64,000 bases of DNA from Lytechinus pictus (GCF_037042905.1 NC_087247.1:5394001-5458000); one strand, 5' to 3'. Positions 5,583 to 63,482 are shown, counted from the stretch's first letter. A program made the numbers and translations. Notes: a model not told the origin generated them from the sequence alone.

Positions 5583-8500
5583 TCAAGCGAAAGCGCCCAG
5601 TGTCAGATCATCTGTAGAAAAAATAAGCGAAGTATAAGAAATACAGAAGTGATTAATTCGATAAGTAAGCATACCAATTCCACAAGCTACTTCGTTGAAA
5701 TGTTTTGGTTATTTTGGTAAAATCATCACGGAAAACTAAAGCATCAAACATCATTTCCTATTTAAACGTTAACTGCTTTATTTCAAATTAAGAGTGCACA
5801 TACATTTACTGTTCACCTTGGTTTAAAGCTCTCTTAACAAATGCCAGAAGCTTTACGCATTCGTGCATGATTGAAGTCACATCATATACATAATAATAAT
5901 ATATAGCATTTATGAGGCGCCGATTATCTAGTTGCCTATTCGAGAGCACGCTAGATATTACTCTGGCTATAGCTCCAGCTGCTCCAGGCGCTTGGTGCAT
6001 TCAAGGAATAAATCCTGCCGGGTACCCATTCACCTTAACTGGGTTGAGTGCAGCACAACGTGGGTAAATTTCTCGCTGAAGGAAAGCACGCCATGGCTAC
6101 GAATCGAACCCACGTCCATCTGATTGAAAGTCAAGAGTCCTCTTACAGCTCGTACATACAGCTCGTACATGCAATGAATGCCGACAGAATGTAGAGTGGC
6201 CCGTTCTCTTTTTTCTGATGGAGGCCTATACCCCCGTAGTTTTGTTAATTATTGGTGTTCCTTTCAGAATAGCAGGTCAGACTACTTAAGCATTTCCTTA
6301 CGCGACGCTCTTATGAAACATACGTTTGAGTGTACTACTCACCATTGTCGTACTGGGTGCATCGTCCGGCGGCGTCACGATGTATGCACCCAGAAGCCCT
6401 TTGCACACCGCTAGTACCATGGTGAATGCAACGTCCAGTAGCATCTAGCTGGGTACAGCCACCTGTTGGGGCATATTGGATACAACGTCCACTGGCATCC
6501 TGGGTGGTACATCCGACAGCCGGAACCTGTTGAACACAACGTCCGTTGGCATCGCGTTGGGTGCAACCACCAGTTGGTGTATGCTGGACACAACGTCCAC
6601 TGGCATCGCGTTGGGTACATCCACCTGTTGGAGCATTTTGAACACAACGTCCACTGGCATCGCGTTGGGTGCAACCACCAGTTGGGGCATGTTGGACACA
6701 ACGGCCACTAGCATCACGTCTAGGGCACGTTCCCCCATCGGTCGGGAACACGCCTGGGGCACGCGGATATGCAGGAGCAGCGGGTGCATATGGAGAGCCT
6801 TGATGATAAGAGTCATCTCCGTAACCTGGATAAGATGGAGCATAAGGTCCAGTCGGTGGAGCATATGGAGACTGTGGGGCATGAGGAGCGTGTGGGGTAT
6901 TTGGTACGTGAGGTGCCTGAGGGGCATTTGGAACATGTGGAGTATGTGGGGCATGCGGCATTTGTGGAGCATGAGGAACTTCCGGGGCATATGGGGTCTG
7001 TGGCAGTTGTGGCGCATGCGGAGTGCGTGGCACACTCGGGGCCTGTGGTGCATGTGGAATTTGGGGGACCCGTGGTGCATTTGGCATTTGGGGGACCCGT
7101 GGTGCATTTGGCATTTGGGGGACCCGTGGGACACTTGGGGCAGATGGTGTGTATGGTGGCAGTTGGGGTGGTGGGGCACGTGGTGAACTTGGAGCTGGTG
7201 GAGCTGGTGCTCGAGGAAAAAGGGGAGGAGCTAAAACGGGGCTCCTTGGGGCAGGTGCACGTGGGCGTGATGGAATTGCTGCTCCTGGAAAGACTGGGAC
7301 ACCCGCAGAAGTCCCTGGTATTACGACACCAGTTGACGTACCACTCCCTGTGCTCCCATCTGTTCCGCCAGTAGCATCAACACCTACTTCTGTGCCATAT
7401 TCTTCCTCACTGCTGTCTTCATCACTACCGTATTCGTATTCTCCATCTGCTGCGTTTTCATATTCCGTAGTGGTAACATCTACATCCGAGATAGGTGCAT
7501 TGGCGGGGGCAACAGGCTGAACAACAGAAACTCCATCCGTTCCATCTGTGCCATCAGTTCCGTCAGTAGTATCAACGCCGGTACCCTCATATTCGTACTC
7601 TTCGCTGCTGCCACTATCGCTGTAACCACCATTTGCAGAGTTACTCAGATCGTATTCAGTAACTGTTACCTCAACATCGGCGTTGACACCTGGTACAGGG
7701 GCATATGCAGGTCCTCCCGGGAGAGGAGCTCGTGGTGGCACAATGGGAGCTCTTGCCGGGGGTAGTGGAGCCTGTGGAAAAGGTGCACGTGGTACCACAG
7801 GAGGGCTTGGAGCGTATGGCTGTCTTGGCGAAAGTGGTACATTTGGAACTGGTGCTCTTGGTACTGCGGGAGCACTTGGATAATATGGCGCTCTTGGTAC
7901 AGGAGGACTCGGAGCACGAGGTACTTGGCGGAACGTTTTATCGCATGATCCTTTGTGTTGTACTGAGACTGAAACGCCCGATTTTACGGAATCGTCATCG
8001 AGATCACATTCATTGTGATACGTGTGTCCGTTTGAACCGCAGACCGCTCCAGATCTGCTGTCACATGAGTCCCTTCGAGCTATGCAGAAAAACAAGACAA
8101 TATTTGATTTGCATATGAGGTACTTGTATGCGGTAATAATCTATTAAACTAAATATAACATGCCGCATACTGCTGTCCTTTGCTTTCTCCTACTATTGAT
8201 AATAGTTTCATATAATTTAATTCAATAACCTTTTGAAAGTCCTTCTGGACAAAAGTCCTCATTTAAACGTAATCTTATTTTGTAAACATTCTATAAATAT
8301 TGTAGTTGATAATCATTTCCTTGCTCCTATTCCGTACAGCTCGTTCTATACTTTGTATCAAGATGATATCCTTCGGGTATGAAGGTGTGCTGAAGCTTTA
8401 GACATGTTAAATTTAAACGTGTAATTTGATTGTAATTGTTTTATTCTGATGTTTACTATTTGTAAACTGATGAATCACGCATGAAGTAAATAGATTAATA

Positions 8501-8889
8501 GATTGATGAAAACAAATTAAATAATAATTGATTGTAATACAAAAACAAATTACACCAAGTAGGGTATTAAACCTTTATGCTTATTCGGTGGTGATTTTGT
8601 CCGTTTTATTAAAATCCAATATAAACACCTTTCAGGCTAGGAAATTGACCAAAATATAAGGTTTTCTTCTTTAAGGTCTCTGATACACAATGACTACATT
8701 CTTTATTTGATATATTACAAATCCAGTTCATGCATACGTATTGTGTATAACCACCCCAGTTTTGAATAGGCATACTTCTAAAGGCCTCAGAAGTCAAATA
8801 TTTTCAATTTAAATCAACTTACTTCTTGGCATTGCCTGGGTTAGGAGAGCTAGTGACAGGAGACATATTGCTGACTTTATCAGCTTCAT
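5583..8889 (-). CDS. g1: secreted Pro/Ala-rich acidic matrix protein with N-terminal 4-Cys Kazal-like domain and 7 C-terminal C-x8-C repeats (~610 aa)
   Basis: Exons 8889-8823 (MKLIKSAICLLSLALLTQAMPR, signal peptide, donor GTAAGT), 8079-6343 (TRRDSCDSRSGAVCGSNGHTYHNECDL...HKGSC; PRAP blocks; SSEEYEY; acceptor ctgcatag, donor GTGAGT) and 5611-5583 (DDLTLGAFA*, acceptor tttctacag). All phase 1 and in frame. Confidence 0.88.
5890..6140 (-). mobile_element. tRNA-derived SINE in g1 last intron
   Basis: B-box GGTTCGATTC on the minus strand; core GTGCTGCACTCAACCCAG..GGTGAATGGGTACCCGGCAGGA shared with copies at 27215 and 58795; (TAT)n tail. Confidence 0.75.
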
Positions 8890-11800
8890 GTCGATCCAAG
8901 AATCTGTCGAATGAAAATCAATGTAAATTTTTTTGAAGTCACGTAAAACTTTGAAATATTATTAGGCATCAATACATACTACGACTGCACGTTCAAACAT
9001 ATCAAAGGCTCATATGAGTGTATCGTAATACACGATAGATAATATTAAAAACTATAAAAGCTTAATGAAATTAAATATCAGACAGTCAAATATTCTGTTT
9101 TCCTCTTCAAGAAAAATAAGAAAGAGGGGAGAATACATGGAAGAAGGGAGAGGAGAAAATAGAGAGAAAGGGAAATGAATACAATAAATGATTAGTCTAA
9201 TGATGAAAAAAAGAACAGTAAGAGATAACGAAATTACAAGAACATGGTAATATACATCATAGATGAATAAAAATAACTGGATATAAATCTACAACAGATA
9301 ACGATACGGTAATCAACGCGTCATGGTTGTAAATAATGCATGGATAGTATCTGATGTGATTTTTTTAATTAATATTTTAGATGAACTGATGAAACTCAAA
9401 TTTCTGAAATGTATTGACCGTTTCAATTTTCAGGATTGAAAGATTACAGGCGAGAATGGCAGTTATATTCAATGTAGCTTGATAAACACTAACCATTAAT
9501 TAAGACATACCTTTCTTTGAAATCCAATATAAACAGGGCACTACACACAGTTCCAAACTCGCAGAAAAGGTTCAACCAGTATCCTGAAAATGTGGAACCT
9601 TAAATTCCTGAGATGCGAAAGATCATGAATGATGCTTTCCTTCGAGAAGGCACATCATTTATAGTTACAAGCACCCAATTATAAATCTTTAAAAAAATAT
9701 GCAAAATCAGTATGAACGTCGCATCTATCTCAATATAATTCAAGAACAAAAACACTCGTGATTCGACGATAGGGTAACCCTGAATGGCTTTACCAGCGCC
9801 AATATTTCTGATGCTGTGATTAACTTTGTTTGGTTTATCTCTACTAGATAGAGACACCCTCTCCTAAATTGCTAAACTATTTCCTGTAAATCATGGTCAG
9901 TTTAATTTATATGATTCGTTTTCTTTATGTAATTTTCATAATGTTTACCCCCTCACCCGAGTGGCTTATACAGGTTGTCATTGGCCCCGATTGATCATGT
10001 TGATAGGCATCGACAAATTCACTGAACGAATTATTGAACAAGCCTGCAGAACGGATGGATGTATAAATCCCATTGAATAGGGGTTAAAACAAACAATGGT
10101 TATCTTTCAAGATTGTTAGAAGGAAGACTGTCTACTTTGAGCAGGATAATATCAGCGAAGACTCGCAATTTAGAAGTTCCTTTCACTTCTTAAAATTGTT
10201 GTTGTCTCAGAACTGTGTAGGGATGGAAGTTTACCAGAAGTTTATTGACTTCAATCAGTAGAAGTCGGATCCATGGTTGAACAAGTCTTGTCTGATAGAA
10301 TGTGGAGCTAATCCAATTTCAAAACACGACGCTAGGATATTTTGCTTGCATGATATTTTTTTTGCGAATTTGCAGTTTATAAACACAATCATAAATATAT
10401 GAGAAAGAATGAATAACTATAACACATGATCCTATTATTAATTTATATATATATATATACACATATATATTAGAATATTTTGTTAATGACATGAAAATGA
10501 ATTAATATGTGTACACGACGGTGTGTTATGGTGTGTGTGTGTGTTTATGGATGCATTCGGGGGGGGGGGTCGATATGTTTAAAACATTTAATCAACATGT
10601 ACTGGCAACAAAGCTTTTCCGTTATCTGATTTGTATGAACAGTAGCGAGGCCCTCTTTGATTTTATCCTTAAAGTCTATTTGTTGGTTTAAGCCTTTCGG
10701 ATTTACTGGGATAAATATCACGCTTCAAGGATTGAGCATTAATGCCAGAGATTCAGGGGCGCTGATTGATAAGCATGATATGCACGTACAAAATATCCTG
10801 TGAGAATTCTTAACGAAATATAGTATAAAATACGAATTATTGAATATGCTAAGTATTGATCAATAAAATTGTCTATTACTTGTAACGTCTCGGTGAAAGA
10901 AAGGAGAGAAAAAAAAGAGATTATGGAAAGGAGAGAGAATGAGGAATAGTCACCTCAGAGAGGGAGAGAGAGAGAAGGAGAAAGGGCGATAAAATGACAT
11001 CTTCAAAAGTCATGAATTATACAAAATGGCAAATGAGATAGAGATAGATAAATAAATGAATATAGATAGATAAAAACATCTAACAGTTACTCGTATTGGC
11101 TTCGATGAAAAACAAAATAATTCTAAAAGTTAATTTGTTTTGTTAATTGAGACTTTATTGTAGGAAAATGCTTAACTTAAATTTGAGAATAATCCTACAA
11201 TAAATACTTAATTGGCAAAAAAAAAACCAGTAACTTTCATAATTATTTTAGATAGATAGAGAAAAGTGTTAAGTAAAATCTAATTTATTTTAAAGAAAAA
11301 AACCCTGAAAAGTTGAAATTTTGTCCTTTTCATGGTGTCCCCATTTATTTCCGGCGTTTTATGTTCTTTCATTCCATTTTGCCTAATACTTGGCCGTAAA
11401 GATCATTATGCTTACGTGTGCCCTGTTGCACTACCATTGTGTTATAACGTTGTCATTAAGTCTAATTATGGTAATTTGATGAGAAATATGAATCTGATAG
11501 GCTGGCATTATTACCAAAGAAGTTAACATTGGGAGCAAACATACTAATAATCGCGAAGGTTTTATACAAATATGTCCAACTCACTTCTTAATTTTGCTTG
11601 CACCCCTCTCATGCATCGCTCTGTCATCGCACTTTCCTCTCTCTCTCTCTCTGCCCATATTTTCGTTTTTATTTTTTCTACCAATTACATTTCCACTCCA
11701 GAATGCTTATGATCCAACTTTACACAATATATTCATTGTGGTTTCGTAACCTCCTTATTCCTTCGAGCTCTTAACCTCTTTCACTGGCGTTTTGTTTTGA

Positions 11801-13001: not shown

Positions 13002-15099
13002 CTATCGTTTTCCAGACACTCCTCCGGAACATGCTTGACCAGAAGGATCATGGTTGCAACTTCCTCCACTGGGGGCATATACAGGACCTCCTCCTGGTGC
13101 TCCTGGTCCTGCTGGTCCTCCTGGGGCATAAGGGCGAGCTGGAGCGTGTGGTGCTGGAATCCTTTGCCCAGGTGCATTAGGTCTAGGTGCTCTTGGTCCA
13201 GGTAGGGGAGCACGTGGCCCTCCTGCAGGTGCTCGGGGCCGAGTTGATGGAGCACGCGGTCCTCCAATGGGTACACTGGGCCTGGGTACAGGAGCTTGGG
13301 ATCCAGGTGCAGGAGCAAATGGTCCTACAGGTCCCCGTGGAGCAGATGGACGCGGGCCCGGGGCATATGGACGGCCGGATACACGCGGTCCGGTTGGTGC
13401 ACGGGGCCCGCCCGGAGCTCTTGGACTGCCTGGAGCACGTGGACTACCTGGGACACGTGGACTACCTGGAGCACGAGGCGAACCAGGGCGAGGAGCACGT
13501 GAACCTCCACGACTACCACCAATCCCATCAGCTCCGACAGCCCCATCAGTCCCGCCATCTCCACCAGCCCCATCAGCTCCACCAGTACCGTCTCCAGCAT
13601 CAGCACCATCAACACCATCTGCGCCATCAATATCACCAGAACCGTAGTTATAGTACTCTTCACCACTACCACTGCTTTCGTCACTGCCGCTTGAACCTTC
13701 ACCTTCGTAATCTCCGTAGTCAGCATCAACTTCACCATCGTAATCACCAACGTCTCCTCCATCTCCACCATCCCCACCGTCACTTGGGGAAACGGGTGCA
13801 AATCTTGTTTCGGGAACTACTGGTGCGGCTGGTGCAGCGGGGACAGGTGCAGCCGGTCTTGGTGCAACTGGGGCATATGCAGGAGCTCTCGGAGGCTGTG
13901 GTCTTGGTGCAGCGGGTACGTATGTTGGAGCACGGGGCATCGGTGGAGCAGGAGCCCGAGGAGCTTGGGCATCTGACTGCTGATCTGAACTTCCACCAGC
14001 ATCGTTCCCGTCTTGAGTAAATGGACCACTACCTCCAGGGGGTCCCGGTGCGAATCCAGGCATACCTGGAGCATGTGGGGCATGGCTCGGAGGAAATGGA
14101 GCATTTGGATAGTATTGTGGGGAATTTGGCTGGTATCCTGGAGCAAATGGCACACCTGGTGCATGTGCTGGGGCAGATGGTGCATGAGGTTGTTGGGGTG
14201 GTGGGGCGTTAGGAGCTGACGGATAAGGGCCTGGAGCAGGAGCTCTAGGCGGTTGATAGCCTGGGTGTCCTGGAGTGGGAGCTCTAGGTGGTTGATTTCC
14301 TGGATAGCCTGGTGCAGGAGCTCTAGCTGGAGGATAGCCTGGTGCGTGTCCCGGTGCTGGAGCACTAGCAGGAGCCCCTCCTCCCCATGATTGGCGGTCA
14401 GCACCACAAGCGGCACCGGGTTTCCCCAGGTCGCACGAATCTCTTGGAACTGAAAGAAAACGGGCAATCAAATGAAGATAGTAAAGTAGATGTGGCCGGC
14501 TACATTCTAGACGCGTAAGCTTTTTATGGCACAACGAGAAATCAATTTGTTTTATGCTCTTTATTTGTATTCATTCCAACTTGTAAAATCATATTCACAT
14601 CGACTAAGAAAAATAAGTTACACTTGCAGATAAAAATACATATGTACAAAGCAGAGGCTGGACCTGGTTTAGGTGCAGCACTATTATGGATATATTTTTT
14701 TTTTCTGAAGGGACTATTGTCATGTCTTGGATAAGAATAAATAACCCTTCGAGTGAAAAGTGAGAGTCAAAACCACAAGACCATTTCGCTCTCACACCAT
14801 CATATTGAAAATGAATAATTTATATATACCGTATACCACAACTAAAAAAGCTATCAATTATTGATATTGGTTACATATCAATAATATAATAATAATTATA
14901 AAGTACGTTATAAAAGCATTTTGTCGCAAATAACTAAAATGAATTACCAACTTGGATTTAAAAAATTGCAAGGAACTATCATAAAAGTGTAAATCATATG
15001 ACTAATGCAATGAAACTCACATCTAGGAGACGCCAAAGAGGAAACACTCAGCGATAAAATACATGACAATATAGCGACAGTCGCCCTCTGCGTCCTCAT
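13002..15099 (-). CDS. g2: secreted Pro/Ala/Gly-rich acidic matrix protein with truncated Kazal remnant (~508 aa)
   Basis: Exons 15099-15021 (MRTQRATVAILSCILSLSVSSLASPR, donor GTGAGT) and 14449-13002 (FPRDSCDLGKPGAACGADRQSW...; acidic DYGDYEGEGSSGSDESSGSGEEYY; ends SCNHDPSGQACSGGVSGKR*; acceptor ttctttcag). Confidence 0.88.
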
Positions 15100-21886: not shown

Positions 21887-24219
21887 CTAGTCATCTAAAA
21901 TAAAGGGGGAGAGAAAATAAAACAAATCAGAAATCAAGCACGAGCGTGCATCAAGCATTAAATATGAAATAATATATTTTTAATTAAATGATGAGACAGA
22001 TTTTCGTCTTACAAGGTAATTTTTTTTCGTTCTTTTTGATGTATTTCTTTACTTTTAATCTAGATTTTCAAACTGACAAAAATTCCTCGAAAGTTAAAAA
22101 ATTATATATTCCCCTTCGACGATTAATAGTAGACAGTGATTAATTGATTGAAATGGTTATACGGGATCATACCTTCATATCTAGCTTTTCATGACAGTGC
22201 ATTGTCGGACATTGTGAGGGCAAGATGAGATTTATATATTAGTTTTGATAGATGCCAATATATTATCATGATTGCATTGATTCATAATGTTGTATTTGTT
22301 TACAATAGTGTTTCTAATAGGCTAAGAAAAATCACCTTCACTTGAATTGTTAGGATCGTTCGCACCACCATCGGTGCAAATGAAATCAGAAACACCATCA
22401 TTACAAGTGCCAGTGCCTGCATCTCCACCTGGGACATTTGCGGTTCCACCATCGGCTCCAGCGGGGACGAAACCAGGAGTTCCAGCGGGTGAAAATCCAG
22501 GAACTATTCCAGGTGCTCCTCCAGGTGCTCCACCAGGTGCTCCGCCAGGTGCTCTTGGCAAAGCACGACCCACACTAGGGACATATGGTCGACTTGGAGC
22601 ATTGGCACGGCGGCGACCACCAGGGGCAGAATATCCAGGACTAGGAGCGAATGATCCAGAGGAAGGAGCAGCTGCAGGGTGTGGAGCACGAGGTAGGGAT
22701 GGGGCACGGGGAAGTGCACGTGGTCTGCCTGGAGCACGTGCAACTCCTACACTTCCACGTGAAGATGGAACACCAGATGTCGTGCCAGGAACACCAGCAA
22801 CTGTCGCAGTTCCGGTCCCAGCATTCCCATCTGCGCCGTCAGCGCCATCAAAACCATCGGCACCGTCAACTCCTTCTGTACCATCAGCACCCTCTGCACC
22901 ATCATATCCTTCGTAATCGTAAGCCTCTTCACTACTGCCACTGCCATCTCCGCCGCCACTTCCGCTTCCTGCACCAGCACCTGCACCGTCACCTGCGCCG
23001 GCTCCTCCTGCTCCAGAATCACCATCAAAATCACCACCAGCATCTGCGGCGAAGCCGGCGAAGCCACCACTACCCACTACTCCTGGAGCATAACCAACGC
23101 CTGGGATTGGAGCATTAGGTGCAAATGCAGGACCAGAAGGAGCGGGTGCAGCAGCAGGTCTTGGTGCGGCTGGTCTCGGTGCAGCGGGTCTTGGTGCCGA
23201 AGGTGTAGGAGCACGGGCAGGGGGAGCACGGGCTGGAGGTGCACGGGCCGGTGGGGCAGCAGGCGATGGAGCATATCCGGGAGCTGAAGGAGCTGCAGGT
23301 GCAGGCGCATACTGAGGTGTTGAGTCATGTGATCCCGAAGTTCCTCCACCTTGATCATATTGCGGACCAGATGGCGCTGCATATCCAGGTTGATATCCGG
23401 GTGCCACAGGGGCATGTGCAGGTGGGGCTGGGGCTGCAGGGCGTGGGACTGGAGCTGCAGGGCGTGGAACAGGGGCAGATGGACGTGGAGCAGGAGCTGG
23501 AGCCCTTGGATGTGGATGAACAGGCGCATTTGGAGCTGCAGCTGGACCATGACCTCCAACTCCGCCTGCTCCCCCAGATCCACCTGGAGCATAGGGGGCT
23601 GATTGTGTCCCCCCTGATGACGATCGGCAAGATCCGTAGTGAGAAACCGATACGTCTTGTCCAGTCCTAGATGCTTCTTTTTCCATCTCGCATTCGTTAT
23701 TGTATGATTTTCCATTGGAGCCACAGACGTTTCTTGTGTCACTCTCGTCACAAGAATCCCTTGGAACTACATAAAACACAAGACATAAATACGGCATCTT
23801 AGAAATTATATACAAAACAGCCACCATACACAAGAAGTTTATGATAAACAATTCAAACTTACGCTTTCCTTAAAACATCATTTTTGGAGCCCACTCTACA
23901 TTTATGCCCCACTTGACAAGCAAATCGCACATAATACCGTAATCCAACATTTATTATTTATTTTACACAATATAGTATTACTGATTACAGAAAAAATATA
24001 AACTTATCATCTTATGAAAAAATACGATTACATGAGACGTTTGCAATAATTTTGTCGACCTGGCTATTCTCTAAAATACATTTATATCTCTATCATAAAT
24101 GGCAATTTAAATCAAAGGCGATGTATGATATATATATACTCACTTCTGGGTGCACCAATTGAAACGGCAATAAGAGAGAATAGGAGGGCCAGGATAACTT
24201 GATGTTTTATAATTTCCAT
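21887..24219 (-). CDS. g3: secreted Pro/Ala/Gly-rich acidic matrix protein with N-terminal 4-Cys Kazal-like domain (~504 aa)
   Basis: Exons 24219-24144 (MEIIKHQVILALLFSLIAVSIGAPR, donor GTGAGT), 23766-22336 (IPRDSCDESDTRNVCGSNGKSYNNECEM...HYGSC; SSEEAYDY; donor GTGATT) and 21894-21887 (DD*, strong pyrimidine-tract acceptor). If the last intron is retained the protein ends GDFS* at 22322. Confidence 0.87.
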
Positions 24220-32200: not shown

Positions 32201-32403
32201 TTAGATAGATGAGACCCAAATCCAAGATTACATGTGAAAAAACTACCCACATGTTGCATATTTTTTAATTCCCAGGGCTTTTTCAAAGTGTAAACCTTTT
32301 TTTGATACGCACTGTATATACATATATACTTACATCTTGGTGCCGCAAATGACGCAGATATCATCAACATTAATATGGCCACACTCCTCAACACGTCCAT
32401 CAT
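29271..32403 (-). CDS. g4: secreted Pro/Ala/Gly-rich acidic matrix protein with N-terminal 4-Cys Kazal-like domain (~395 aa)
   Basis: Exons 32403-32334 (MMDVLRSVAILMLMISASFAAPR, donor GTAAGT), 30683-29574 (SPRDSCDRGASGPVCGTNGKIYNDLCDL...YEYC; SDSSEESYDY; donor GTAAGT) and 29278-29271 (DD*). Confidence 0.88.
30952..32314. mobile_element. Tc1/mariner-like non-autonomous element in g4 intron
   Basis: TA|CAGTGCGTATCAAAAA..GTTTACACTT ... AAGTGTAAAC..TTTTTGATACGCACTG|TA; no transposase ORF. Confidence 0.85.
31060..31436. mobile_element. Kolobok-like MITE nested in the Tc1-like element
   Basis: TTAA|AGTGATTGGTTAAC ... GTTAAACAATACCT|TTAA. Confidence 0.7.
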
Positions 32404-33954: not shown

Positions 33955-34101
33955 NNNNNNNNNNNNNNNNNNNNNNNNNNNNNNNNNNNNNNNNNNNNNN
34001 NNNNNNNNNNNNNNNNNNNNNNNNNNNNNNNNNNNNNNNNNNNNNNNNNNNNNNNNNNNNNNNNNNNNNNNNNNNNNNNNNNNNNNNNNNNNNNNNNNNN
34101 N
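33955..34101. other. Assembly gap
   Basis: Run of N. Confidence 0.99.
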
Positions 34102-38700: not shown

Positions 38701-39387
38701 TTTTGGGCATTTTCATTATCCAGTGTGATGAAAATTTTGCCCATTCTAAAGTAATTGCTGCTTATTTTTAACCTTACTGGACAATCAAGATGCTTCCCGC
38801 ATTGGGTAAAATACTGCCCCAAATTAGTTGGAACATAATTACCCTCGTGCTGGTTAAAATTGTACCCAATATGTTTTTACAGTGTATGAAGCCGGGGCGT
38901 TGTGAGAATTTCACACATTTTGTAATCAATTGTAAATCGATTTCGGTCCAAGAAGCAATCATAAGTCTTGCAAGAAAATTCAAATAATTCCGTATTAATC
39001 ATTTTCTAGCTCCATAACAAAATCTATAACTGGCAATGGTCCATCGTTTTCTACTGTTAAAATTTACACTTTATTCTTCTAGCAACATCTACAATGTGCA
39101 TAGAGGGGCATCGTTACCCCCTTTTCATAGGAGATGGCATTTTAAACTGGTTAAATTGGAGAATCTAATCACAGATTATGTGATAAGCAAGTAAAAGCCA
39201 TTCCATCAGTTAATGTGCAACTTACAGTGGATTTTCTTTTACTAGCTAGTATTAAATACTGCAAGAAAACTAAGCACGCGGAAAAAATACTGTGAATGAT
39301 ATTGGTTACAATACCTTTTGTTTCAGCCGATATCATCGATGAGAGCATGATTACAGTAAGAACAGTCCACATGTTACGGATACACAT
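35797..39387 (-). CDS. g5: secreted Pro/Ala-rich protein with C-terminal 6-Cys Kazal domain (~361 aa)
   Basis: Exons 39387-39315 (MCIRNMWTVLTVIMLSSMISAETK), 38536-38315 (VKRDDNGGSCGSNGQCGGDPAPC...), 37875-37723, 37099-36629 (GCGSDSSEEC...GGTSNGCD) and 35963-35797 (GFADEPCEICPRLFIAQPMQVCGTDGQTYRSSCDLRHSACVRKDHRLKQIRNGPC*). All GT-AG, phase 1. Mostly missed by the ORF track. Confidence 0.85.
38632..38884. mobile_element. CACT-ended MITE in g5 intron
   Basis: TA|CACTCTAAAAAAAATATTGGGTA ... TACCCAATATGTTTTTACAGTG|TA. Confidence 0.7.
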
Positions 39388-41562: not shown

Positions 41563-41720
41563 ACATTTTCATAATTTCATAACGTTGAGATCATGGCCTC
41601 CTTCCATACAGGATGTATACTGGAGATCGCACAGAGTGGTATACGTTCTTCCATCTGACCCGCAGACTTCACTACCCCTTGAGACCCCTTGAGATCTCAA
41701 CCGGACACGGGATACAGATG
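41563..41720 (-). pseudogene. Decayed Kazal-coding segment of g6
   Basis: 10-bp tandem duplication ACCCCTTGAG (41674-41693) shifts the frame. The out-of-frame remainder reads SEVCGSDGRTYTTLCDLQYTSCMEGGHDLNVMKL*KC, with TGA at 41569-41571 where paralogues have the Gly of the terminal G-x-C. Confidence 0.85.
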
Positions 41721-44333
41721 TCAGCATCCTTCGTATCGCACCCTTCCTCACACACTTCTTCAACATGTTCACCATCAGTGGGGTTTCCACCATCCCCGTC
41801 ACCACCACCATTACTACCATCTTCGTCACCATCACCTTCCCCACCACCACCACCACCACCACCATTACCCCCAGCCACACCCTTCCCGCCACCACCACCA
41901 CCACTTTGTTCTGTGGAGCTACCAGTAGGAGAATTGGAAGAGTAGACAACAACTGGAACCAACTTAGGCATGTTAGGGATGAGGTGAACAATGGTTTGAT
42001 GGAAACCTGATGATACTTTCTTATCGCCTCCTTCTTTTCGAGTGCTGCCTCCTGTATCACCCGCATCCTCACCTGCGTACAGGGAGAACAAGGTCGTGAG
42101 ATACGGGCGTTTTAATCACAGGAGGCAGTACCATCCATGAACACACATCAAGACCACAACAATAACAACAACAAACATTTTATTTGGACAACCGAGACAG
42201 GATACAATCTAAAACGGAATCGAATTAACTAATTCGTGTTATATGTTTTATTATTCACGTATAAATTTCAAAACAAAAAAAATCTATAATAAATAAGTAC
42301 AAACAAAATAAATAGTAAACAAAAGTACAAGATGTAGATCAAATGGAATGAACTTAATAAATATCAATTCTCAAGCTATTTATATCACCCAAGTCATTGG
42401 ATTCTATTCCTAGAAGAAATGTGAGTAACGGTTCGAGAGGAACATATAGTAACAATTACTACGGTATAAAATGGAAATGACATTTAAAATATTATTCTTG
42501 ATGTGACATAACTAGACCTGATAATTTCAGCTAAAGTTTTGTCGAAAACCTATAAGAGGACTACCGCTACGTTCAATTTCAAAGAAGGAGAAAGGGAACA
42601 AACAAACAAAAATCCTTAGCCCACTCAAACATACAAGCAAAGTAACATACAAAAGATCAACGAAATATACTCATTGCTCAACCATTTGGGCCACCAATAT
42701 CAATGCAATCAAAATCTATAGCTAGCAATGACTGTCATGGGGAATGAAGATTACCGCGCACCTGACGTGCCCCCAGCATCTCCACCACCATCACCGCCTT
42801 CGCAACCACCTTCACCACAACCACCGTCACCCCCTTCACCACCGCATCCTTCGCCTCCTCCTTCACCTCCCTCGCATCCCTCCCCGCCACCGGATTCGCC
42901 ATCTGTACTCTCTTCACTGCTGGAGCTGCTGCTGCTACCTTCACCACCACTGACACCACCATCGGCACCACCACTGGCACCCTCTCCAGCATCACAACCA
43001 CCACCACCACTGGCGTCTCCACCCTCACATCCTCCGTCACCGCCGCCATCACCGCCGCCGTCACCACCACCACCATCGCCTCCACCGCAGCCGCCTTTTC
43101 CGCATCCGCCATCTCCGCCACCGTCTCCGCCATCTCCGCCACCGTCTCCGCCACCATCGCCTCCACCGCAGCCGCCTTTTCCGCATCCGCCACCGTCACC
43201 ACCTCCATCACCGCAACCATCGGCTCCTGCATCGCAAGTGCCTCCTCCTCCACCTCCCCCTCCTGATGGAATAATAACCAACGTAATAAATAACAAGAAC
43301 GTGGGGGGGGGGCTTGATATCGAGAATTGATGTATATGGGAACCGAAATAGTCATTTCCAATTCATACGTCCTTTTTTCAAATGTTTTAATATAACTTTC
43401 ATGAATTTAGAAATTTTACAAATTTGCTTGGAATGGTAGCGGTTCTTTGTTTTGCTTTATTAGCTATTAAGAGTAATCCGTAAGCATAATGCTGTGCGTG
43501 AATACAGGGGCGGATCCAGGATTTTCCAAAGGGGGAGGGGGCAAATTTTGCGGAGGAAAATTTTGACAAGCCAAAAAAAAAAAGGTTTTCAACCATGAAT
43601 TAAAGACATTTCGTGCCCGAAAAAAGTTGACAAGCAAAAAAAAAGGTCTTTAATTTTAAAGGGGGGGGGGGGACATTTCGGTTTCAATTGTATTTTTACA
43701 TTACAAATTTTAATTTCTCTTCTCAAAGGGGGGCACGTGCCCTATGTGCCCCCCTCTGGATCTGCGCCTGCGTGAATATAAATTTGTCATTTTCGTGTCA
43801 TCTAATGGAACAAACTGTTGGGCATTTAATAGTCGTTCAAATGTCTTTAATATCAAGAAGCATACATTTTCTTAACAACTTTCTCACATAATTATGTTCT
43901 CAATGTTAGGGACACTGCTAAAAACTTACAAAGCCCGAAATATTGTTTTTCTTTTATCACTAATCAATATTTTTGAAAGTCTGGAGGATTATGCTCATTC
44001 AAATATTTAATTGTTAGAAAGAGGATTTCGGAAAAAAATAAAAACAGACATTGACTGTCGGCTTGTTTATAGATCCAATATAATCTGTCAAATATTATTT
44101 GCATTTTACAAATTCTAAATCTACAAGAAATTCCATAGCAAGGCAAAAGTGAACATGCTGGAAATAAAAAGAAAATGATTCATCATTTTGACATCAAACA
44201 TAATGAGTGGTAGCTGAAATATATATATGTATATAAAACAAAAAATCTTACGCTTTTCTCTTGGAGCTCCTTCAGTTACCCTACACAAGAGGAAGAAACA
44301 GACAAGGAGTGCCAATCCGGTGACAGTCTTCAT
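41672..44333 (-). CDS. g6: secreted Gly/Asp/Cys-rich acidic protein, Kazal domain truncated by frameshift (~327 aa; may be a pseudogene)
   Basis: Exons 44333-44252 (MKTVTGLALLVCFFLLCRVTEGAPREK), 43262-42762 (RGGGGGGGTCDAGADGC...SSSSSSSEES..., donor GTGCGC) and 42072-41672 (ends DICIPCPVEISRGLKG*). Confidence 0.75.
43505..43770. mobile_element. CAGGGGCGGATCC-type short element in g6 intron
   Basis: CAGGGGCGGATCCAG ... CTGGATCTGCGCCTG with 8-bp TSD CGTGAATA (43497-43504, 43771-43778). Confidence 0.8.
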
Positions 44334-52993: not shown

Positions 52994-55707
52994 TTAGCAG
53001 GCTCCATCCTTTGCCTTCGAAAGCAGGAGATCACCACGGATACAAGCAGAGTATCGGAGGTCACATGCACTTCTGTATGTCTGTCCGTCTGTACCGCACA
53101 CCCCCATGCTATGTCCCACGAAATGGTTTGGACAGGGAACGCAGTGGTTTCTCAGGTCCTCTAAATGCAGAAGGAAGTCATATGATAGGGTCAGGTATAA
53201 TTTTCTTGATTAGATAATAATATTGGAGAAATTAAAAGAATGTATTGAATTTTAAAGGATTTTCATCAAGATTATTAGTTGATATGTTTTTATTATACGT
53301 ACCACTAATTTGATGCTTATTGACATATTACATATGTTACGCCTTGACCTTACAAGATGAGGTAACATATTCAATTTTGTCTTTCAATTGATTTATTACA
53401 TTTTTTTATATACCTTCATTTCAAATCACCGTGTCACCATAATACTCCTAAAGAGATGTACTTTTCTGAAATTATTTGAAATAATATAAGTGAAGTGAAA
53501 ACAAATCAATGGTTCCAGGGAGATGTCTCTCTTTTATGCTTATTTCATATCCATTCAATATCGAAGCAAATCGTTGCAAAATGTGTTGCATTGATTTATA
53601 ATACTGCACCGCCTATAGCTATCCCCGAAGTATTTTTTTCTAAACGCAGCTAAATGGGTAATACAATTATTATTGCAGCATTGCTACAAACAATGCCACC
53701 CTACCTTTTCGCAAAAGAAGCATCAGGATTGATGTTCCTCAAGAGAGGTTCACATTTCCCCCTCAAAAACCAAAATAGCATAAGCGGGAGATTTTGTTTT
53801 ATGTGACGTGTATCGATGAAGACGGCCATTGAATGTGACTACATTTAAACAAAAAAATGTCCCACCGTAATCACCATTGGTATCACAACCATTACTGGTG
53901 CCGCCATCTCCATTATCACCACATCCGTTGTCGCCATTGTCTCCATCACTGGGGCTTTCGGGTTCAGGTGCAGATGGAGCCTTTGGAGCGGGAGCTGGTG
54001 CAGGAGGAGCAGGGGGAGCAGGAGCAGGTGGAGCTCTCGGTGCTGGAGCTGGTGCAGGTGCTGGAGCTCTTGGTGCCGGGGCAGGAACTCTTGGTGCCGG
54101 GGCTGGAGCTCTTGGTGCCGGGGCTGGAGCTCTTGGTGCCGGGGCTCTATAAACAGGCGCCCTAGGAGCCTGAGCTGGGGCTCTATAAACAGGCGCCCTA
54201 GGAGCTGATGGTGCAGCGGCGGGTGCATATGCAGGAGCACGGGGAGATGGAGCACGCGCTGGTGCACTAGGGGCTGGTGCCCTTGCAGGAGCTCTGGGGG
54301 CTGGTGCTTGTGCAGGTGCTCGTGGACGTGGAGCGGCAGCAGGGTAACCAGAAGGAGCAGCAGCAGGTGCTCCAGCTCCTCCGCCTCCGGCTCCTCCACT
54401 AAAGCCTCCACCATCGCCGCCGCCAGCACCTCCTCCCCCACCACCACTTGAACCACTTCCGGCACCGTATTCATATCCTCCACACTCTTCACTACTGTCA
54501 CCACCACAACCGCCTGTAAACATTGAGACATTTATATATTATGTATTTTAGCAATAAAGATATACTCTACCACTATAGATAGCATTAACATTTATTGATA
54601 CTGGTATTTTCGTTACATTTTCTGAATGAGATGTTTTCATTGTCTCTTTAGTCTTACATAATTTTTAATTCCGAAGGAATATAGGCCTACATTTAGTTTC
54701 TTTTTTCAATGTGACTTAAACTAACAGATCTGGGGCAGTAACTTCAACCTTCTTCATTTCCAATAGCATCATATATCAAAATTACCCATCGGATGATAAT
54801 TTATTATAAGCTGATATATTCAAATCGGAGTAAAACCATTAAAGAAAACTTTTCCCGGGATAACAATGATATAATTAGGCCTATATATTGCTCGAATAAT
54901 GAAAGTATATTTATTTTACCTCCGAATCCATCTTCGCTGCTGCCTCCACCGTAGTCGTATTCATAACCGTAATCGTATCCCTCGGCTCCATCTCCTCCCT
55001 CTGCTTCACCGTACGCTGCATAATAACCTGGCCCTGATGGAGCAAATGCGGGAGCAGAAGGAGCTCTTGCGGGTGCTCTCATCGGAGCCCTAGGTGATGG
55101 AGCGGCTGGGATCGGTGCCCGAGGTGCTGGGGCTGGAGCACGTGCTCGTGGGGCTGGAGCTCGTGGGGGAGGAGGAGGTGGAGGCGGAGCTCGGGGAGCA
55201 GGCACTGGGGCTGGGGCTGGTGCAGGAGCAGCCGGTGCACATGCCCTGGGATCTGCTGAGCAGGGATCCGTGGAGCCACAGTCAGATCCGCCGTTGTCAC
55301 ATCCATTTCCGTTATCATCACGTTTCTCTGCAAACATTCAGTGCAAAATGAAGGAAATCTGATTTTTGTTTCAATGTACAATTTTCTCTTTAGAGACGGG
55401 TATATTTTTTAATCAATGGCATATTAACCATCTGTAATAGAAATTATATGACAACATTAAATGTAACGTCTCCATTTTACTAATCTCTGTGACAACTGTC
55501 TGCCAATTCACCCCCCCCCAAAAAAAAAAAGGAACAATATCACATTTCATGTTTTTAAATGCCAAGTCAATATGATCAAATCAAATCAAGCCTTGCTTTC
55601 TTTGGGTGGTGTGAACACTTCTTACCTCGCGGCGCTGCGACAGAGGGGTCGACCGTCAATGCCAGCAAAACTAGCAACACTAGGGTTTTCACCAAATCCA
55701 TCTTCAT
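52994..55707 (-). CDS. g7: secreted Pro/Ala/Arg-rich protein with C-terminal 6-Cys Kazal domain (~434 aa)
   Basis: Exons 55707-55626 (MKMDLVKTLVLLVLLALTVDPSVAAPR), 55327-54920 (EKRDDNGNGCD...), 54513-53866 (GGCGGDSSEEC...APAPRAP repeats...GGTSNGCD) and 53160-52994 (EDLRNHCVPCPNHFVGHSMGVCGTDGQTYRSACDLRYSACIRGDLLLSKAKDGAC*). All phase 1. Confidence 0.88.
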
Positions 55708-57896: not shown

Positions 57897-58048
57897 NNNN
57901 NNNNNNNNNNNNNNNNNNNNNNNNNNNNNNNNNNNNNNNNNNNNNNNNNNNNNNNNNNNNNNNNNNNNNNNNNNNNNNNNNNNNNNNNNNNNNNNNNNNN
58001 NNNNNNNNNNNNNNNNNNNNNNNNNNNNNNNNNNNNNNNNNNNNNNNN
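57897..58048. other. Assembly gap
   Basis: Run of N. Confidence 0.99.
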
Positions 58049-58794: not shown

Positions 58795-59010
58795 TGATAG
58801 AAATTTATCCACATTGTGCTGCACTCAACCCAGGTGAGGTGAATGGGTACCCGGCAGGAGTAATTCCTTGAATGCACTGAGCGCTGAAAGGCAGCTCGAG
58901 CTAAAGCCGGGATAATAATAATAATAAACAATGCGCCTCGGCATAGATTATTTCTAGATAGATGGCACTATATAAATGCCTATTATTATTATTATTATTA
59001 TTGTTATTAT
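58795..59010 (+). mobile_element. 5'-truncated SINE with (TAT)n tail in g8 3'UTR intron
   Basis: TTGTGCTGCACTCAACCCAGGTGAGGTGAATGGGTACCCGGCAGGA...TTCCTTGAATGCAC is the reverse complement of the 5890-6140 copy; (TAT)n tail. Confidence 0.8.
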
Positions 59011-59338
59011 TGATATAATACGAGTTATAGTGGAGGGTGTTCTGATTCAGTTTAAAGAAATGTTTTACAGCAGCGACCTCAAAACTGTATGTACATTATC
59101 GAGTTATGATATGAAGATTATACAGCCTAAAATCTGTAACCGCTTATAATCCCTCTGGCCATTTTGTATGCATAATCTCTTCTCCATATGGAGTATTTCA
59201 TCCAGAAGTAAACATTTAAAAACTTTTCTTCATTTTTGCTCTTTCATGTTCGATAAGTCATTTATACTATGGATGATAAGTAATAGCTACTGAGATCACG
59301 ATTCTAGACAATTAAGATAGGCATGGGAACTCACCATT

Positions 59339-62300
59339 TTAGCAGCGCCCTATCTTGGTCATCGTGAGCTTCTTGTTGGCTTTGGAACAGGCTTCGTAGC
59401 TTAGGTGACATGGACTTTCATAGGTCTTTCCGTTAGAACCACATACCTTGTACTGCTTTACCATATTTGCTGGGCATTTAGTACATCCATGTCTGGTGGA
59501 ACCTGCATTGATGCACAAATAATTTCTGCACAATTTACAAGAATTTCTGCTATGGAATAGTAAGGTATTGGTTTCGTATATGTTCGTTCATAAAATGTTC
59601 GTTCGAGAATAGCAAAGGCACCACTTAAAACCAGGATGTAAGTTTTGTTTCATTTTGTTTTATTTTTTAAACCTTATTGTAAGTGCTTTAGTCATGATTT
59701 CGATGCCATTATTTTGTTTCAAACATTTCATTTTCAGCATCAGTTGAATTGGATGAATTTCAACAGCCTGTTTGTAATATTCCCTGTCCTGTGAGAGCTT
59801 TGATTCAACTATCCACAGTTGACGCTGGTTTAAAACCAAATGATAAGCGATATATTAATCAAATAGTAAGATAGTTTTGTCATGAAAATGTAAACTTGTG
59901 ATACAATCCTCACATATTCCTTACCACCGTTTCCTCCACCGCCGATCCCGCCGCCATTACCGCCAGCTCCAGTTCTCTCTTCGATACCACCAGCTCCATT
60001 CCCTCCAGCGTCACATAATTCACCACCAGCCAGGTTGCAACCGCCATCTCCTCCATTCCCTCCTCCTCCTCCATCACCACCATCGCATCCCTCGCCTCCG
60101 TTGCCATCGCAACCACCATCTCCGCCATCACCACCACCATCTCCGCCATCACCATTATCTCCGCCATCACCTCCATCACCACCATCACCTCCATCACCAC
60201 CGTCACCTCCATCACCGTCTCCGCCACTCTGCCCACCGACCCACCTAGGAATGTAGATTGGGATGAACTGAGGGCGAGAAGGAGGGAATACATTGTTGTA
60301 GCTTCCACCTGGGGGGTCTGCACTGCTTTCTTCATATCCATCGCCGCCATCACCGCCACCGTCTCCACCACCGTCTCCGCCACCATCTCCACCGCCATCA
60401 CCTCCGTCACCTCCATCCCCACCATCACATTCTTCTTCACTGCTGCTGCTACTGCTTCCTCCTCCTCCTGTGCATCCACCTCCACCGTCAGCAGCTAATG
60501 CACATCAAAGGTAAATAAGAAATGTGAGGCCGTATTGTCGATGCAATGCACGCACTTCCTATGTTATAGTTATAGTTAGTATATGGCTTTTTCAACAAAG
60601 TAAAATTATATAATTATATAAAATAACATAGTCCAGACCATGTTTGTCACTTCAGATAAGTATAACAGGAGTAAATCATTATTCAACCACAGATTATTTA
60701 ATTTTTTTTCAAATCGTAAAAATGGGGATGTAGAACAAAAACACAGAAAGAGTAAAAAGTACATCAAAAAGAGAGGTATGGGAGATGCAACTAATTATTT
60801 CCCATATTATTTGACTGAGAGAAAAAGTAACTTCACACCTAGATCGTCTTGCCCCCCTTCCTATCAACATATCCCCGCAATCATGACAAAAGCGACAAAG
60901 AAAAAAGTCAAACTTACCCGAAGCTCCACCAGCATCGCCACCATCACCTCCGTCACACCCGCCATCACCTCCACATCCGCCATCTCCACCACCGTCACCA
61001 CCTCCACAATCTCCGCCACAATCTCCACCGCCGTCACCACCATTTCCACCACAGTCGCCGCCACAGTCGCCGCCACCATCCCCTCCGCAATCGCCACCGC
61101 CACAGTCGCCTCCACCGTCTCCGCCATCTCCACCATCACAGTTGTTACCGCTGCAATCTCCTCCGTCTCCTCCATCGCCCCCGTCGCCGCCATCACAACC
61201 TCCGTCTCCACCGTCACACCCTCCATCACATCCACCATCGCCGCCATCACCACCATCGCATCCACCTCCGTCACCGCCTTCAGCATCGCCTTCCTCTTCA
61301 CTGCTGCTGCTGCTGCTCCCGCCTCCACTTCCACCAGCAGATGCACCACCATCACCGCCATCACCACCGTCTCCGCCACCATCGCCGCCTCCATCGCCAC
61401 CACCGTCACCACCTCCTCCATCTCCTCCACCACCATCTCCTCCACCACCACCATCTCCTCCACCACCACCATCTCCTCCGCCTCCATCACCACCGCCACC
61501 ACCACCACCGCCACCACCGCCGTTTCCATCATTACCGCCACCGCAGTCACCACCTCCACCGTCGCAGCCACCATTGCCGCCTCCATCACCACCACCTCCA
61601 TCACCTCCACCATCGCCGCCGCCATCTCCACCGTCACCGCCATCACCTCCGTCACATCCATCCCCGTTACCACCATCGCATCCATCTCCACCACCGTCTC
61701 CTCCGCCATCCCCTCCATCACAACCGTCTCCATTACCCCCATCACAAGAATCTCCGTCTCCTGTAAATAAAAGTACATAATTATTATAATGATGACAATG
61801 ATGATGATGTTGATGATGATAATAATGATAATTATAAAAATAATGATAATAAACATGATAAATGTAATAATAATAACAATAATGATAATAGTACGTTTTA
61901 TTTTAATGTTACCCGTTTACATCAAAATTTTGTTCAAATCTGTCATACTTTGAGGAGCCCATAATATACAAGCTTTGCTTTCTATAGATCCCACTATAGT
62001 TGGATCCTCAATTTTCGCAACTTATAAATCATATTATCCTTTGTATTTTATCATCATAATGTGTCTATTTTAAGTTGATTTGATGACCTTGGAATACTAT
62101 TTATGACATTGACTTGTTGCGATTATATTAACTTGGCTTATATTTGTTCAAATTGAAATAAATGAAATGAAATGAAATAATAATAATGATAGTATCTTAT
62201 TCTTGAAATATTGCTTATTGAAGCTTTATCCCCAACTATAAAAGACTGGATGACTGACTATCATATTCAAATATAACTGTTTCCTGAATGGCGTTGAAAC

Positions 62301-62718
62301 CACATCATGATAATGATGCATGAGTTGGCGTGTTTATTAGACAATGCAATTAGTGTCAGATGCTGCAAAAATAACAACTAAAACATCACACTCCCACTGA
62401 TACTGCAATTTCTGGAGACTTCTCACATTTATATATATATATATATATATTCAAATGTTTCTTGATTTAGAAAAAAAACTCATGACAATGAAATACCTTT
62501 ACATCTGATGACATGGCTCAAGAAAAACTTGAAATAAACCCAAATGAAAGACGAAAATTCAAAATTGAAATTACTATTCTTGTAAGTTATATGCCTGTGT
62601 CTCATGACTTTGAGGAATACCTACGTTTCGTGATCATGTTTAACCTAGGAGCTGCTACAGCACTGTCTACGACAAATCCTAGGCAAGCCAGGAGAGCGAA
62701 CACGGCTACCGGCCTCAT
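59339..62718 (-). CDS. g8: secreted Gly/Asp/Cys-rich acidic protein with C-terminal 6-Cys Kazal domain (~556 aa)
   Basis: Exons 62718-62625 (MRPVAVFALLACLGFVVDSAVAAPRLNMITK), 61760-60918 (RDGDSCDGG...GGDGG repeats, SSSSSSEEE), 60494-59925 (SSSSSSEEEC...PQFIPIYIPRW...) and 59502-59339 (GSTRHGCTKCPANMVKQYKVCGSNGKTYESPCHLSYEACSKANKKLTMTKIGRC*). All phase 1. The true Gly-rich frame is absent from the ORF track. Confidence 0.86.
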
Positions 62719-63472
62719 GCTGGTAAATGTGCCTGCAACAGAAAAAAAACAAAATTAAAACAAAAGAGGAAAATCAACAAAATCAATCAAAGTCAAAAGA
62801 ATATATCGTGAGGATAATCAACGTGCTCGACGAATATCCTCCACCATATTTTACGCCTACTACTCACTCAGATAGAAATCTTCTTTTTTTTATAATCATC
62901 CCTGGATGAAATTTTGAATTTTGTTTGAAATGCATAACTCCCATTACGATTCTATTGTTGTCAATTTTTTTCCACTGCACAGTGTTTTTTTTTTATTCTT
63001 TCTTGTTAACTTTTGACATTTCGTTTGATGCATGGCATTCCTTCGTGTAAAAATTTTAACAAATCTTTATGAAATTCCAGCTGATAAACTGTCTACTCCA
63101 TGATGTTTTTCCATGACGTCATACACTTTGCGAGTATTTATTGTGGTAGGTATTTTCTGGTTTGACGCTGGAACTATCTCATAGATCCTACCAATCTAAT
63201 TTCCAGAAGATTCATTTTGAATAAAGAATAATCGCTCCAAGAATGTGATTTACACATTCACAAAGTCATATAAAAGTGAAAAACATTTTTTTTCCAATTT
63301 GCTCTTGGGATCGTATGATACCGAACCAATGCAAATCAATTAATAGAGTATACTTACTCCTTGAATATTATAATTCCACAGATTTATTAAGATGTTTCTC
63401 TCCTGATGATTCCCTGTGTCTCAAAAACGGCTCGAACGAGCAAAAAATGATACTTCTTTCAAGACAAGTTCT

Positions 63473-63482
63473 CTATTTATAA
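63473..63482 (-). promoter_or_regulatory. Putative TATA box of g8
   Basis: TTATAAATAG on the minus strand about 116 nt upstream of donor GTAAGT at 63357. Confidence 0.6.

Follow-up and report, generated by a model that had tools for sequence, protein, structure and literature searches.

We analysed a 64-kb stretch of the Lytechinus pictus genome (C3:5394001-5458000; GCF_037042905.1, NC_087247.1), called the window below. A reading made from the sequence alone had proposed that it holds eight co-oriented genes of one plan, coding for secreted proteins with a Kazal domain, Pro/Ala-rich blocks and acidic Gly/Asp blocks, and had named it a candidate biomineral matrix locus. Gene models were built from consensus GT-AG splice sites together with composition and open-frame scans of the window. 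We find eight tandem genes, g1 to g8, which stand out as GC-rich coding islands and lie all on the minus strand; the common plan proposed by the sequence-only reading was confirmed, and each element that it had claimed was found. Splice sites are consensus and phase consistent throughout, every coding intron in the models is in phase 1, and the open frames have 327-603 codons. Positions are given in window coordinates, negative numbers lying to the left of the window.

8889-8823, 8079-6335, minus strand: g1 model, 603 amino acids
15099-15021, 14449-13002, minus strand: g2 model, 508 amino acids
24219-24144, 23766-22322, minus strand: g3 model, 506 amino acids
32403-32334, 30683-29554, minus strand: g4 model, 399 amino acids
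39372-39315 (or from 39387), 38536-38315, 37875-37723, 37099-36629, 35963-35797, minus strand: g5 model, 356 amino acids
44333-44252, 43262-42762, 42072-41672, minus strand: g6 model, 327 amino acids
55707-55626, 55327-54920, 54513-53866, 53160-52994, minus strand: g7 model, 434 amino acids
62718-62625, 61760-60918, 60494-59925, 59502-59339, minus strand: g8 model, 556 amino acids

The genes fall into two architectures, neither of which is described in any paper of the literature searched. Class A (g1-g4) has one large exon with an N-terminal Kazal domain of four cysteines, Pro/Ala blocks, an acidic Gly/Asp block with the motif SSEE, more Pro/Ala sequence and a C-x8-C tail. In class B (g5-g8), the six-cysteine Kazal is C-terminal and has an exon of its own, which comes after two or three low-complexity exons. 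The coding exons downstream of the signal-peptide exons are as follows (AP-rich stands for Ala/Pro-rich).

6335-8079, minus strand: g1 main exon; RTRR, four-Cys Kazal, P/A/V/R block, two acidic SSEE blocks, P/Q block, seven 18-residue C-x8-C repeats
13002-14449, minus strand: g2 main exon; half-Kazal remnant RDSCDLGKPGAACGADRQSWGG, AP-rich blocks, acidic Gly/Asp blocks
22322-23766, minus strand: g3 main exon; four-Cys Kazal, AP-rich blocks, acidic SSEE block
29554-30683, minus strand: g4 main exon; four-Cys Kazal, AP-rich blocks, acidic SSEE block, end ...YDNG, then a GTAAGT-like site
38315-38536, minus strand: g5 exon; KR/DDNGGSCGSNGQCGG, then AP-rich block
37723-37875, minus strand: g5 exon; AP-rich, then acidic Gly/Asp
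36629-37099, minus strand: g5 exon; GCGSDSSEEC, then AP/K-rich, end ...NDNG
35797-35963, minus strand: g5 C-terminal six-Cys Kazal exon; Kazal_2 42 bits
42762-43262, minus strand: g6 Gly/Asp/Cys-rich exon; carries SSSSSSSEE
41672-42072, minus strand: g6 last exon as assembled; TAG stop inside the Kazal after a 10-bp duplication
41572-41697, minus strand: core of the g6 Kazal, out of frame; Kazal_2 35.7 bits for this piece
54920-55327, minus strand: g7 exon; EKR/DDNGNGCDNGG, then AP-rich and acidic Tyr/Gly
53866-54513, minus strand: g7 exon; GCGGDSSEEC, then Gly-rich, AP-rich, DNG/Cys
52994-53160, minus strand: g7 C-terminal six-Cys Kazal exon; Kazal_2 34.7 bits
60918-61760, minus strand: g8 Gly/Asp/Cys-rich exon; carries SSSSSSEEE
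59925-60494, minus strand: g8 second Gly/Asp-rich exon; carries SSSSSSEEE
59339-59502, minus strand: g8 C-terminal six-Cys Kazal exon; Kazal_2 40.9 bits, contains CPANMVK

The proteins of g1-g5 and g7 consist of 17-24% Pro and 11-23% Ala, with acidic Gly/Asp islands. The acidic extreme is formed by g6 and g8, which are nearly pure Gly/Asp/Cys (44-50% Gly, 10-17% Asp) and contain an S6-7E2-3 run; the Gly/Asp exons are devoid of Lys and Arg. The SSEE-type acidic motif, which had been noticed before, is the conserved island outside the Kazal domain; we recovered it in seven of the eight genes, and g2 has the variant SDESSGSGEE. At the C-terminus of g1 (6346-6736) there are seven tandem 18-residue repeats of the form GGCTQRDASGRCVQHAPT (C-x8-C), and g2, g3 and g4 have a single C-x(8-9)-C unit each in this place. 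Beyond the signal peptide and the Kazal region, a SEG-filtered BLASTP among the paralogues gave almost no similarity, and a nucleotide comparison of their promoters and signal exons gave nothing alignable, just as the sequence-only reading had it.

A hydrophobic N-terminal exon is present in all eight genes (judged without a dedicated signal-peptide predictor), that of g5 being the weakest. Each of these exons ends at a GT donor one base into a codon, that is, in phase 1.

8823-8889, minus strand: g1 signal-peptide exon; MKLIKSAICLLSLALLTQAMPR plus 1 nucleotide, GTAAGT donor, phase 1
15021-15099, minus strand: g2 signal-peptide exon; end ...SLASPR plus 1 nucleotide
24144-24219, minus strand: g3 signal-peptide exon; TATAAATA about 120 nucleotides upstream, no 5' acceptor
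32334-32403, minus strand: g4 signal-peptide exon; end ...SFAAPR plus 1 nucleotide
39315-39387, minus strand: g5 putative signal-peptide exon; MCIRNMWTVLTVIMLSSMISAETK plus 1 nucleotide, ATG at 39387 or 39372
44252-44333, minus strand: g6 signal-peptide exon; end ...EGAPREK plus 1 nucleotide
55626-55707, minus strand: g7 signal-peptide exon; end ...SVAAPR plus 1 nucleotide
62625-62718, minus strand: g8 signal-peptide exon; end ...AVAAPRLNMITK plus 1 nucleotide

The signal exon was said to end mostly in (A/S/M)PR, and it does so in five of the eight genes; the remaining ends are APREK in g6, APRLNMITK in g8 and AETK in g5. The basic cleavage site that had been proposed next to it is there in 8 of 8 genes, as R-x-x-R or K-R, and it spans the first coding junction (g1 RTRR, g2 RFPR, g3 RIPR, g4 RSPR, g5 KVKR, g6 REKR, g7 REKR, g8 ITKR).

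A Kazal domain (PF07648 / PF00050) was called if its Pfam Kazal_2 score was above the curated cut-off of 22.8 bits. This is the case for g1 (38 bits), g3 (37), g4 (23.9 against the cut-off of 22.8), g5 (42), g7 (34.7) and g8 (40.9). The sequence-only reading had seen a Kazal in all eight genes; it is intact in these six, but only a first-half remnant (RDSCDLGKPGAACGADRQSWGG, no Pfam Kazal match) is left in g2, and the domain of g6 is frameshifted. In g6, 10 bp are duplicated in tandem (41694-41675, two copies of TCTCAAGGGG), which puts a TAG in frame within the domain; a second stop precedes the last cysteine position by two codons, and the remainder of the gene is open. This lesion could be a genuine loss, an allelic variant or a mistake of the assembly.

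Classical Kazals have three disulfides, 1-5, 2-4 and 3-6. The class B domains (g5, g7 and g8) show all six cysteines and, like the significant Pfam scores, agree with known Kazal inhibitors in this respect. The class A domains, that is, those of g1, g3, g4 and of the GLEAN3_17590-like genes described below, differ in having only four; judged by spacing only, Cys1 and Cys5, which form a pair in the classical domains, are gone. An AlphaFold model of the four-Cys g1 domain reached a predicted local distance difference test (pLDDT) score of 81.6, and its best 50 Foldseek matches in the PDB were all Kazal or follistatin domains, with template modelling (TM) scores of 0.60-0.76, the E-values for this 50-residue query being only 2e-3 to 3e-2. 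The g1 domain is thus predicted to have a Kazal fold, and any inhibition by it is putative. The presumed P1 residue, taken by eye as two residues after the second cysteine, varies among the six intact Kazals (S, E, R, R, N and A). In a tree of the Kazal domains calculated from 52 columns, class A lies on one side of a branch (89/84), and a monophyletic class B is neither established nor refuted by the data (approximately unbiased test, p = 0.30); the Kazal exons of g7 and g5 are 57% identical. Since the Kazal is decayed in g2 and g6 and absent from g9, a further gene beyond the right edge of the window, it seems dispensable as far as the gene sequences tell. Downstream of g1-g4 we found neither a hidden C-terminal exon nor any relic of a Kazal. 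The coding sequences of g1 (6335-6345) and g4 (29554-29575) end in ...DNG, directly followed by GTGAGT or GTAAGT; since DNG with GTRAGT is the phase-1 donor context that precedes the Kazal exon of g5, these ends may be the vestige of a lost exon.

Five proteins with the same block architecture have been identified in the tooth mineral matrix of the echinoid Strongylocentrotus purpuratus, in hypochlorite-treated tooth powder (Mann et al. 2008, PMC2614417). This group consists of GLEAN3_17587, 17588, 17589, 17590 and 22278, four of which have a Kazal domain, GLEAN3_17587 being described as the sole member without one (PMC2614417). Phosphopeptides are known from GLEAN3_17588 and GLEAN3_17590/22278, and a FAM20C-like protein occurs in the tooth matrix (Mann et al. 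2010, PMC2830187); the phosphopeptides of GLEAN3_17588 fall in its g6-matching part. According to the spicule paper of Mann et al., the group is possibly tooth-specific. The tooth-matrix proteomics to which the sequence-only reading had referred is therefore real and applies to our genes (PMC2614417). Its assignment of the locus to a biomineral matrix family holds, but the locus is more than a candidate and the family is not new: we are dealing with orthologues of a known tooth-matrix family. The S. purpuratus group and the window genes share the signal peptide, the Kazal domain, AP-rich neutral or basic blocks, acidic Gly-rich SSEE blocks and a collinear order; judged by eye, the identity in the diagnostic peptides is about 70-100%. 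They differ in that the genes of 17590/22278 type are found to the left of the window, at -39, -54 and -71 kb.

The published peptides from tandem mass spectrometry (MS/MS; PMC2614417) map best to g1, g2, g3, g4, g6, g7 and g8. Three are identical, namely APTPGHPGYQPPR and APAPPMPR in g2 and CPANMVK in g8, the last one being an MS/MS peptide assigned to GLEAN3_17586; the others are 50-90% identical. A protein database search with the whole of g1 and with the g1 Kazal region returned low-complexity bacterial matches or nothing, and no echinoderm relatives, so that the orthology is based on the protein sequences and peptides given in PMC2614417.

A comparison with the printed sequences shows that GLEAN3_17589 fits g1 and GLEAN3_17587 fits g7. 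GLEAN3_17588 (1982 residues) is collinear with g6, g5, g4, g3 and g2, in that order, g2 corresponding to its C-terminal part. Because of this collinearity, and because the signal peptide of g4 is found in the middle of the protein, we conclude that GLEAN3_17588 is a fusion of five separate genes (window 13002-44333). Its N-terminal "acidic Val-rich motif" is likely to be a wrong frame of the g6 Gly/Asp exon (42762-43262), which reads ...VAAAAPAVKR...KEEAKDAVVKG...VVAKAVMVVEML in an alternative frame, to be compared with the published ...VAAAAPAVRR...KEEEKDAVVKE...VVAKVVMVVEML. We favour the Gly/Asp frame as the real one because it links the family-typical donor after APREK to the downstream exon validated by mass spectrometry, in phase 1 at both ends, and because it carries SSSSSSSEE, as does the paralogue g8. 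The fusion, the frame error and the uniform phase 1 of the coding introns are mentioned in no paper of the literature searched. Furthermore, g7, which is of the 17587 type, has an intact and phase-compatible six-Cys Kazal exon (52994-53160) that is missing from the old GLEAN3_17587 model, and the published C-terminal tail of this model, which is not conserved, looks like intron read-through. Of the three peptides of GLEAN3_17586, two are absent from the window. One peptide, YACFTNTPK, occurs exactly at +127.2 kb, within a multi-Kazal gene and about 68 kb away from the CPANMVK exon of g8, and so GLEAN3_17586 may be a composite model as well.

No other paper in the literature searched mentions the GLEAN identifiers of the group, and both the gene structure and the place of these genes in a larger tooth-matrix cluster appear to be unreported. 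Since 2008-2010, hardly any work has followed on these tooth-matrix proteins. The corrected models alter the list of proteins on which echinoderm biomineral proteomics relies: there are five genes for one 1982-residue model, no Val-rich domain, and a Kazal on the 17587-type protein.

We consider it very likely that the eight genes of the window arose by tandem duplication and code for matrix proteins of the echinoid tooth that are secreted and largely disordered. Such proteins would first lose their signal peptide, and a proprotein convertase would then cut the R-x-x-R or K-R site that is encoded across the first phase-1 junction. The Golgi kinase FAM20C, of which an orthologue is present in the tooth matrix, would phosphorylate the conserved D-S-S-E-E-x-Y. 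The Arg-bearing, polyproline-like Pro/Ala blocks and the acidic blocks of Gly, Asp and phospho-Ser could bind Ca2+, amorphous carbonate, Mg-calcite surfaces and each other, and the proteins would come to be occluded in and around the tooth mineral. The Kazal module might inhibit serine proteases of the matrix or serve as a small folded anchor. The family would have grown by exon-level tandem duplication of symmetrical phase-1 exons.

Several points weigh against this interpretation. Convertase cleavage, phosphorylation of SSEE by FAM20C, mineral binding and protease inhibition are deduced from motifs and from S. purpuratus data. The proteins were said to be rich in S-x-E sites, which is too strong, as each has few of them (2-5). 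Overall, g2 and g5 are not acidic (isoelectric point about 7-8). For g5, moreover, no peptide has been reported from the orthologous segment, and its signal exon, with the weak donor GTATTG, is the least certain exon of the set. We did not obtain any junction or tissue expression support in L. pictus. Reads were mapped to 5001-10900 only, and they came from two RNA-seq runs of unknown tissue and from two small runs whose kind could only be guessed as RNA. For g1, the two RNA-seq runs gave no reads, their sole signal being a repeat at 5890-6085, which is not evidence of silence; for the g5-g6 stretch, the run search listed none. In the two small runs, the listed non-repeat contig pieces lie only inside the g1 coding exon, which is a weak hint of transcription. 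Finally, the S. purpuratus proteins are similarly abundant in intact and in powdered teeth (Mann et al. 2008, PMC2614417), so that part of the pool is possibly extracrystalline and not occluded in the mineral.

This last observation, together with the dual distribution proposed by the same authors (PMC2614417), also speaks for the main alternative, in which the genes code mainly for proteins of a soft extracellular matrix or sheath that surrounds the tooth elements, or for working Kazal inhibitors of matrix proteases; the proteins would accompany the mineral through purification and have no part in its regulation. Six of the Kazals are intact, with a presumed P1 residue that varies between copies, and echinoderm skeletal proteomes commonly contain Kazal proteins of agrin-like kind. 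On the other hand, the proteins survive the hypochlorite cleaning of tooth powder. In g2, g6 and g9 the Kazal is missing or damaged, yet the low-complexity frames are still open, which argues that this domain is not the essential part, and the island that is conserved outside the Kazal is the SSEE motif. We therefore regard this alternative as unlikely, but as one to be kept in mind.

Potentially, the genes could code for secreted adhesive, mucus or egg-coat proteins, with the identifications in the S. purpuratus tooth matrix being contaminants. Some adhesive or coat proteins have a similar composition, and the RNA runs give no tie to the tooth in L. pictus. This is very improbable given that multiple peptides per protein were found in the S. 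purpuratus tooth matrix (e.g. 10 for GLEAN3_17589) and that the genes are linked in the genome to phosphodontin, the major tooth phosphoprotein. That the shared plan is an artefact of low complexity, or the array one of pseudogenes, is hardly credible: low-complexity DNA does yield long open frames in several frames, the Kazal of g6 does contain a frameshift and a premature stop, and only half of that of g2 is left, but all eight genes have consensus, phase-consistent splice sites, intact signal peptides and frames of 327-603 codons, orthologous proteins have been sequenced by MS/MS, and the Kazals pass the Pfam cut-offs.

The tooth-matrix genes of the window are part of a larger cluster. Beyond its right edge, where the sequence-only reading had suspected a continuation, we find the gene g9 (+70030 to +72806), which has the same signal-exon design: its signal exon MKFEQSVFALVFLSFLIGTAITAP starts at +72806, Gly-rich, AP-rich and (DNG)n exons come after it, and a Kazal was not found in g9. 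Multi-Kazal (agrin-like) genes follow on the same strand at +80 to +86.5 kb and at +124 to +144 kb. To the left, the three genes of GLEAN3_17590/22278 type have a four-Cys Kazal with a run of six Asp (NKCTRGVSGTVCG.NGVTY.DACDVDDDDDD). The third of them, at -71 kb, has a (K)DEED-repeat C-terminus like that of GLEAN3_22278, and there is a six-Cys Kazal exon just downstream, at -72.9 kb. Genes on the plus strand further left are Gly/Asp-, Asp/Cys- and Ser/Asp-rich, several of them with class-B-type Kazal exons at -179, -169, -157 and -77 kb.

To the left there is also an orthologue of phosphodontin (plus strand, C3:5271876-5272733, window -122124 to -121267), with about 25 repeats of the EISSGEGEEPK type. 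Phosphodontin (GLEAN3_18919; PMC2830187) is also a tooth-matrix phosphoprotein, and its orthologue, about 122 kb to the left, has a signal exon at -122931 (MDRLFVIVLFVAMATITTAAP) that ends in ...TAAP, in phase 1, and is of the same "...AAP" type as in the window genes. It differs in its repeats, in having no Pro/Ala blocks, and in that no Kazal was seen in its repeat exon. In summary, the super-cluster extends over about 325 kb (C3:5.21-5.54 Mb, -181 kb to +144 kb) and has about 17 genes with the signal-exon design or variants of it, in a plus-strand left arm and a minus-strand right arm, and many class-B-type Kazal exons. The array g1-g8 belongs to this cluster, which includes the phosphodontin orthologue, and this is reported in no paper of the literature searched. 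The origin by local duplication that had been inferred earlier fits well: of the 14 closest matches to the g7 Kazal exon in the 812-Mb genome, 11 fall into C3:5.215-5.530 Mb, and the genes have the phase-1 signal-exon design in common.

The sequence-only reading had likened the genes to the vertebrate SCPP cluster. The SCPP genes (SIBLINGs, enamel proteins and caseins) have phase-0 introns, and their cluster derived from SPARCL1, which bears a Kazal. Membership in the SCPP family we reject, since the introns of the window genes are in phase 1 and since both linkage to SPARC-type genes and sequence homology are missing: matches to SPARC_Ca_bdg (PF10591) are found only on C18 and C7 and none near C3:5.2-5.5 Mb, and the window genes have no sequence similarity to the family. 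What stands of the comparison is the organisation, that is, tandem genes for secreted, low-complexity and disordered mineral-matrix proteins, conserved 5' exons (a non-coding one, which is putative in the window genes and seen as sequence signals, and then the signal exon), an SSEE-type FAM20C motif, and a division into acidic and Pro-rich members; what does not stand is membership in the family and the richness in S-x-E. A presumed parent with a Kazal-type module that was repeatedly lost would be a further likeness, and the mineral, apatite there and Mg-calcite here, a difference. The likeness is best described as analogy, not homology.

The linkage to phosphodontin and the common type of 5' signal exon suggest that sea urchins have assembled a dedicated tooth-matrix gene cluster, as vertebrates did with SCPP; the convergent evolution of mineral-matrix gene families would thereby become directly testable. 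One could go further and assume that the super-cluster, with the eight window genes as its core, goes back to a single ancestral gene with a Kazal, whose symmetrical phase-1 exons were duplicated in tandem, and that the Kazal was lost repeatedly, in g2, g6, g9 and phosphodontin. This would be an independent echinoderm replay of the route that led from SPARCL1 to SCPP; we give it a chance slightly below even.

Two features upstream of the signal exons had also been counted by the sequence-only reading, a short non-coding exon and a TATA box, each in seven of the eight genes. Both counts were reproduced, as sequence signals only. There is an AG acceptor 10-15 nucleotides upstream of the ATG in all genes except g3. 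In g2, g4, g5, g6, g7 and g8 we find a motif of TATA type, in most cases TATAAATAG, and 100-160 nucleotides downstream of it a GT donor; the TATA of g3 is 120 nucleotides upstream of its ATG, and no TATA-type motif was found upstream of g1.

63470-63481, minus strand: candidate TATA box of g8, TATAAATAGAGA; GTAAGT donor 124 nucleotides downstream
56182 (g7), 44918 (g6), 39901 (g5), 32907 (g4), 15515 (g2): candidate TATA motifs similar to that of g8
33955-34101: gap in the assembly, in the intergenic sequence that separates the g5 stop (35797) from the g4 promoter region
57897-58048: gap in the assembly, flanked by simple repeats, in the intergenic sequence that separates the g8 stop (59339) from the g7 TATA (56182)

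Neither gap touches a predicted exon, although each may hide further sequence. Since no predicted exon adjoins them, continuity or frame across the gaps has no effect on the gene models. The repeat at 5890-6085 is an interspersed one, just downstream of g1, and many RNA reads and contigs match it in part. A kringle-domain-like open frame (-33743 to -33411) is located between g1 and the genes of 17590 type, and reverse-transcriptase-like frames are found at -22 to -21 kb.

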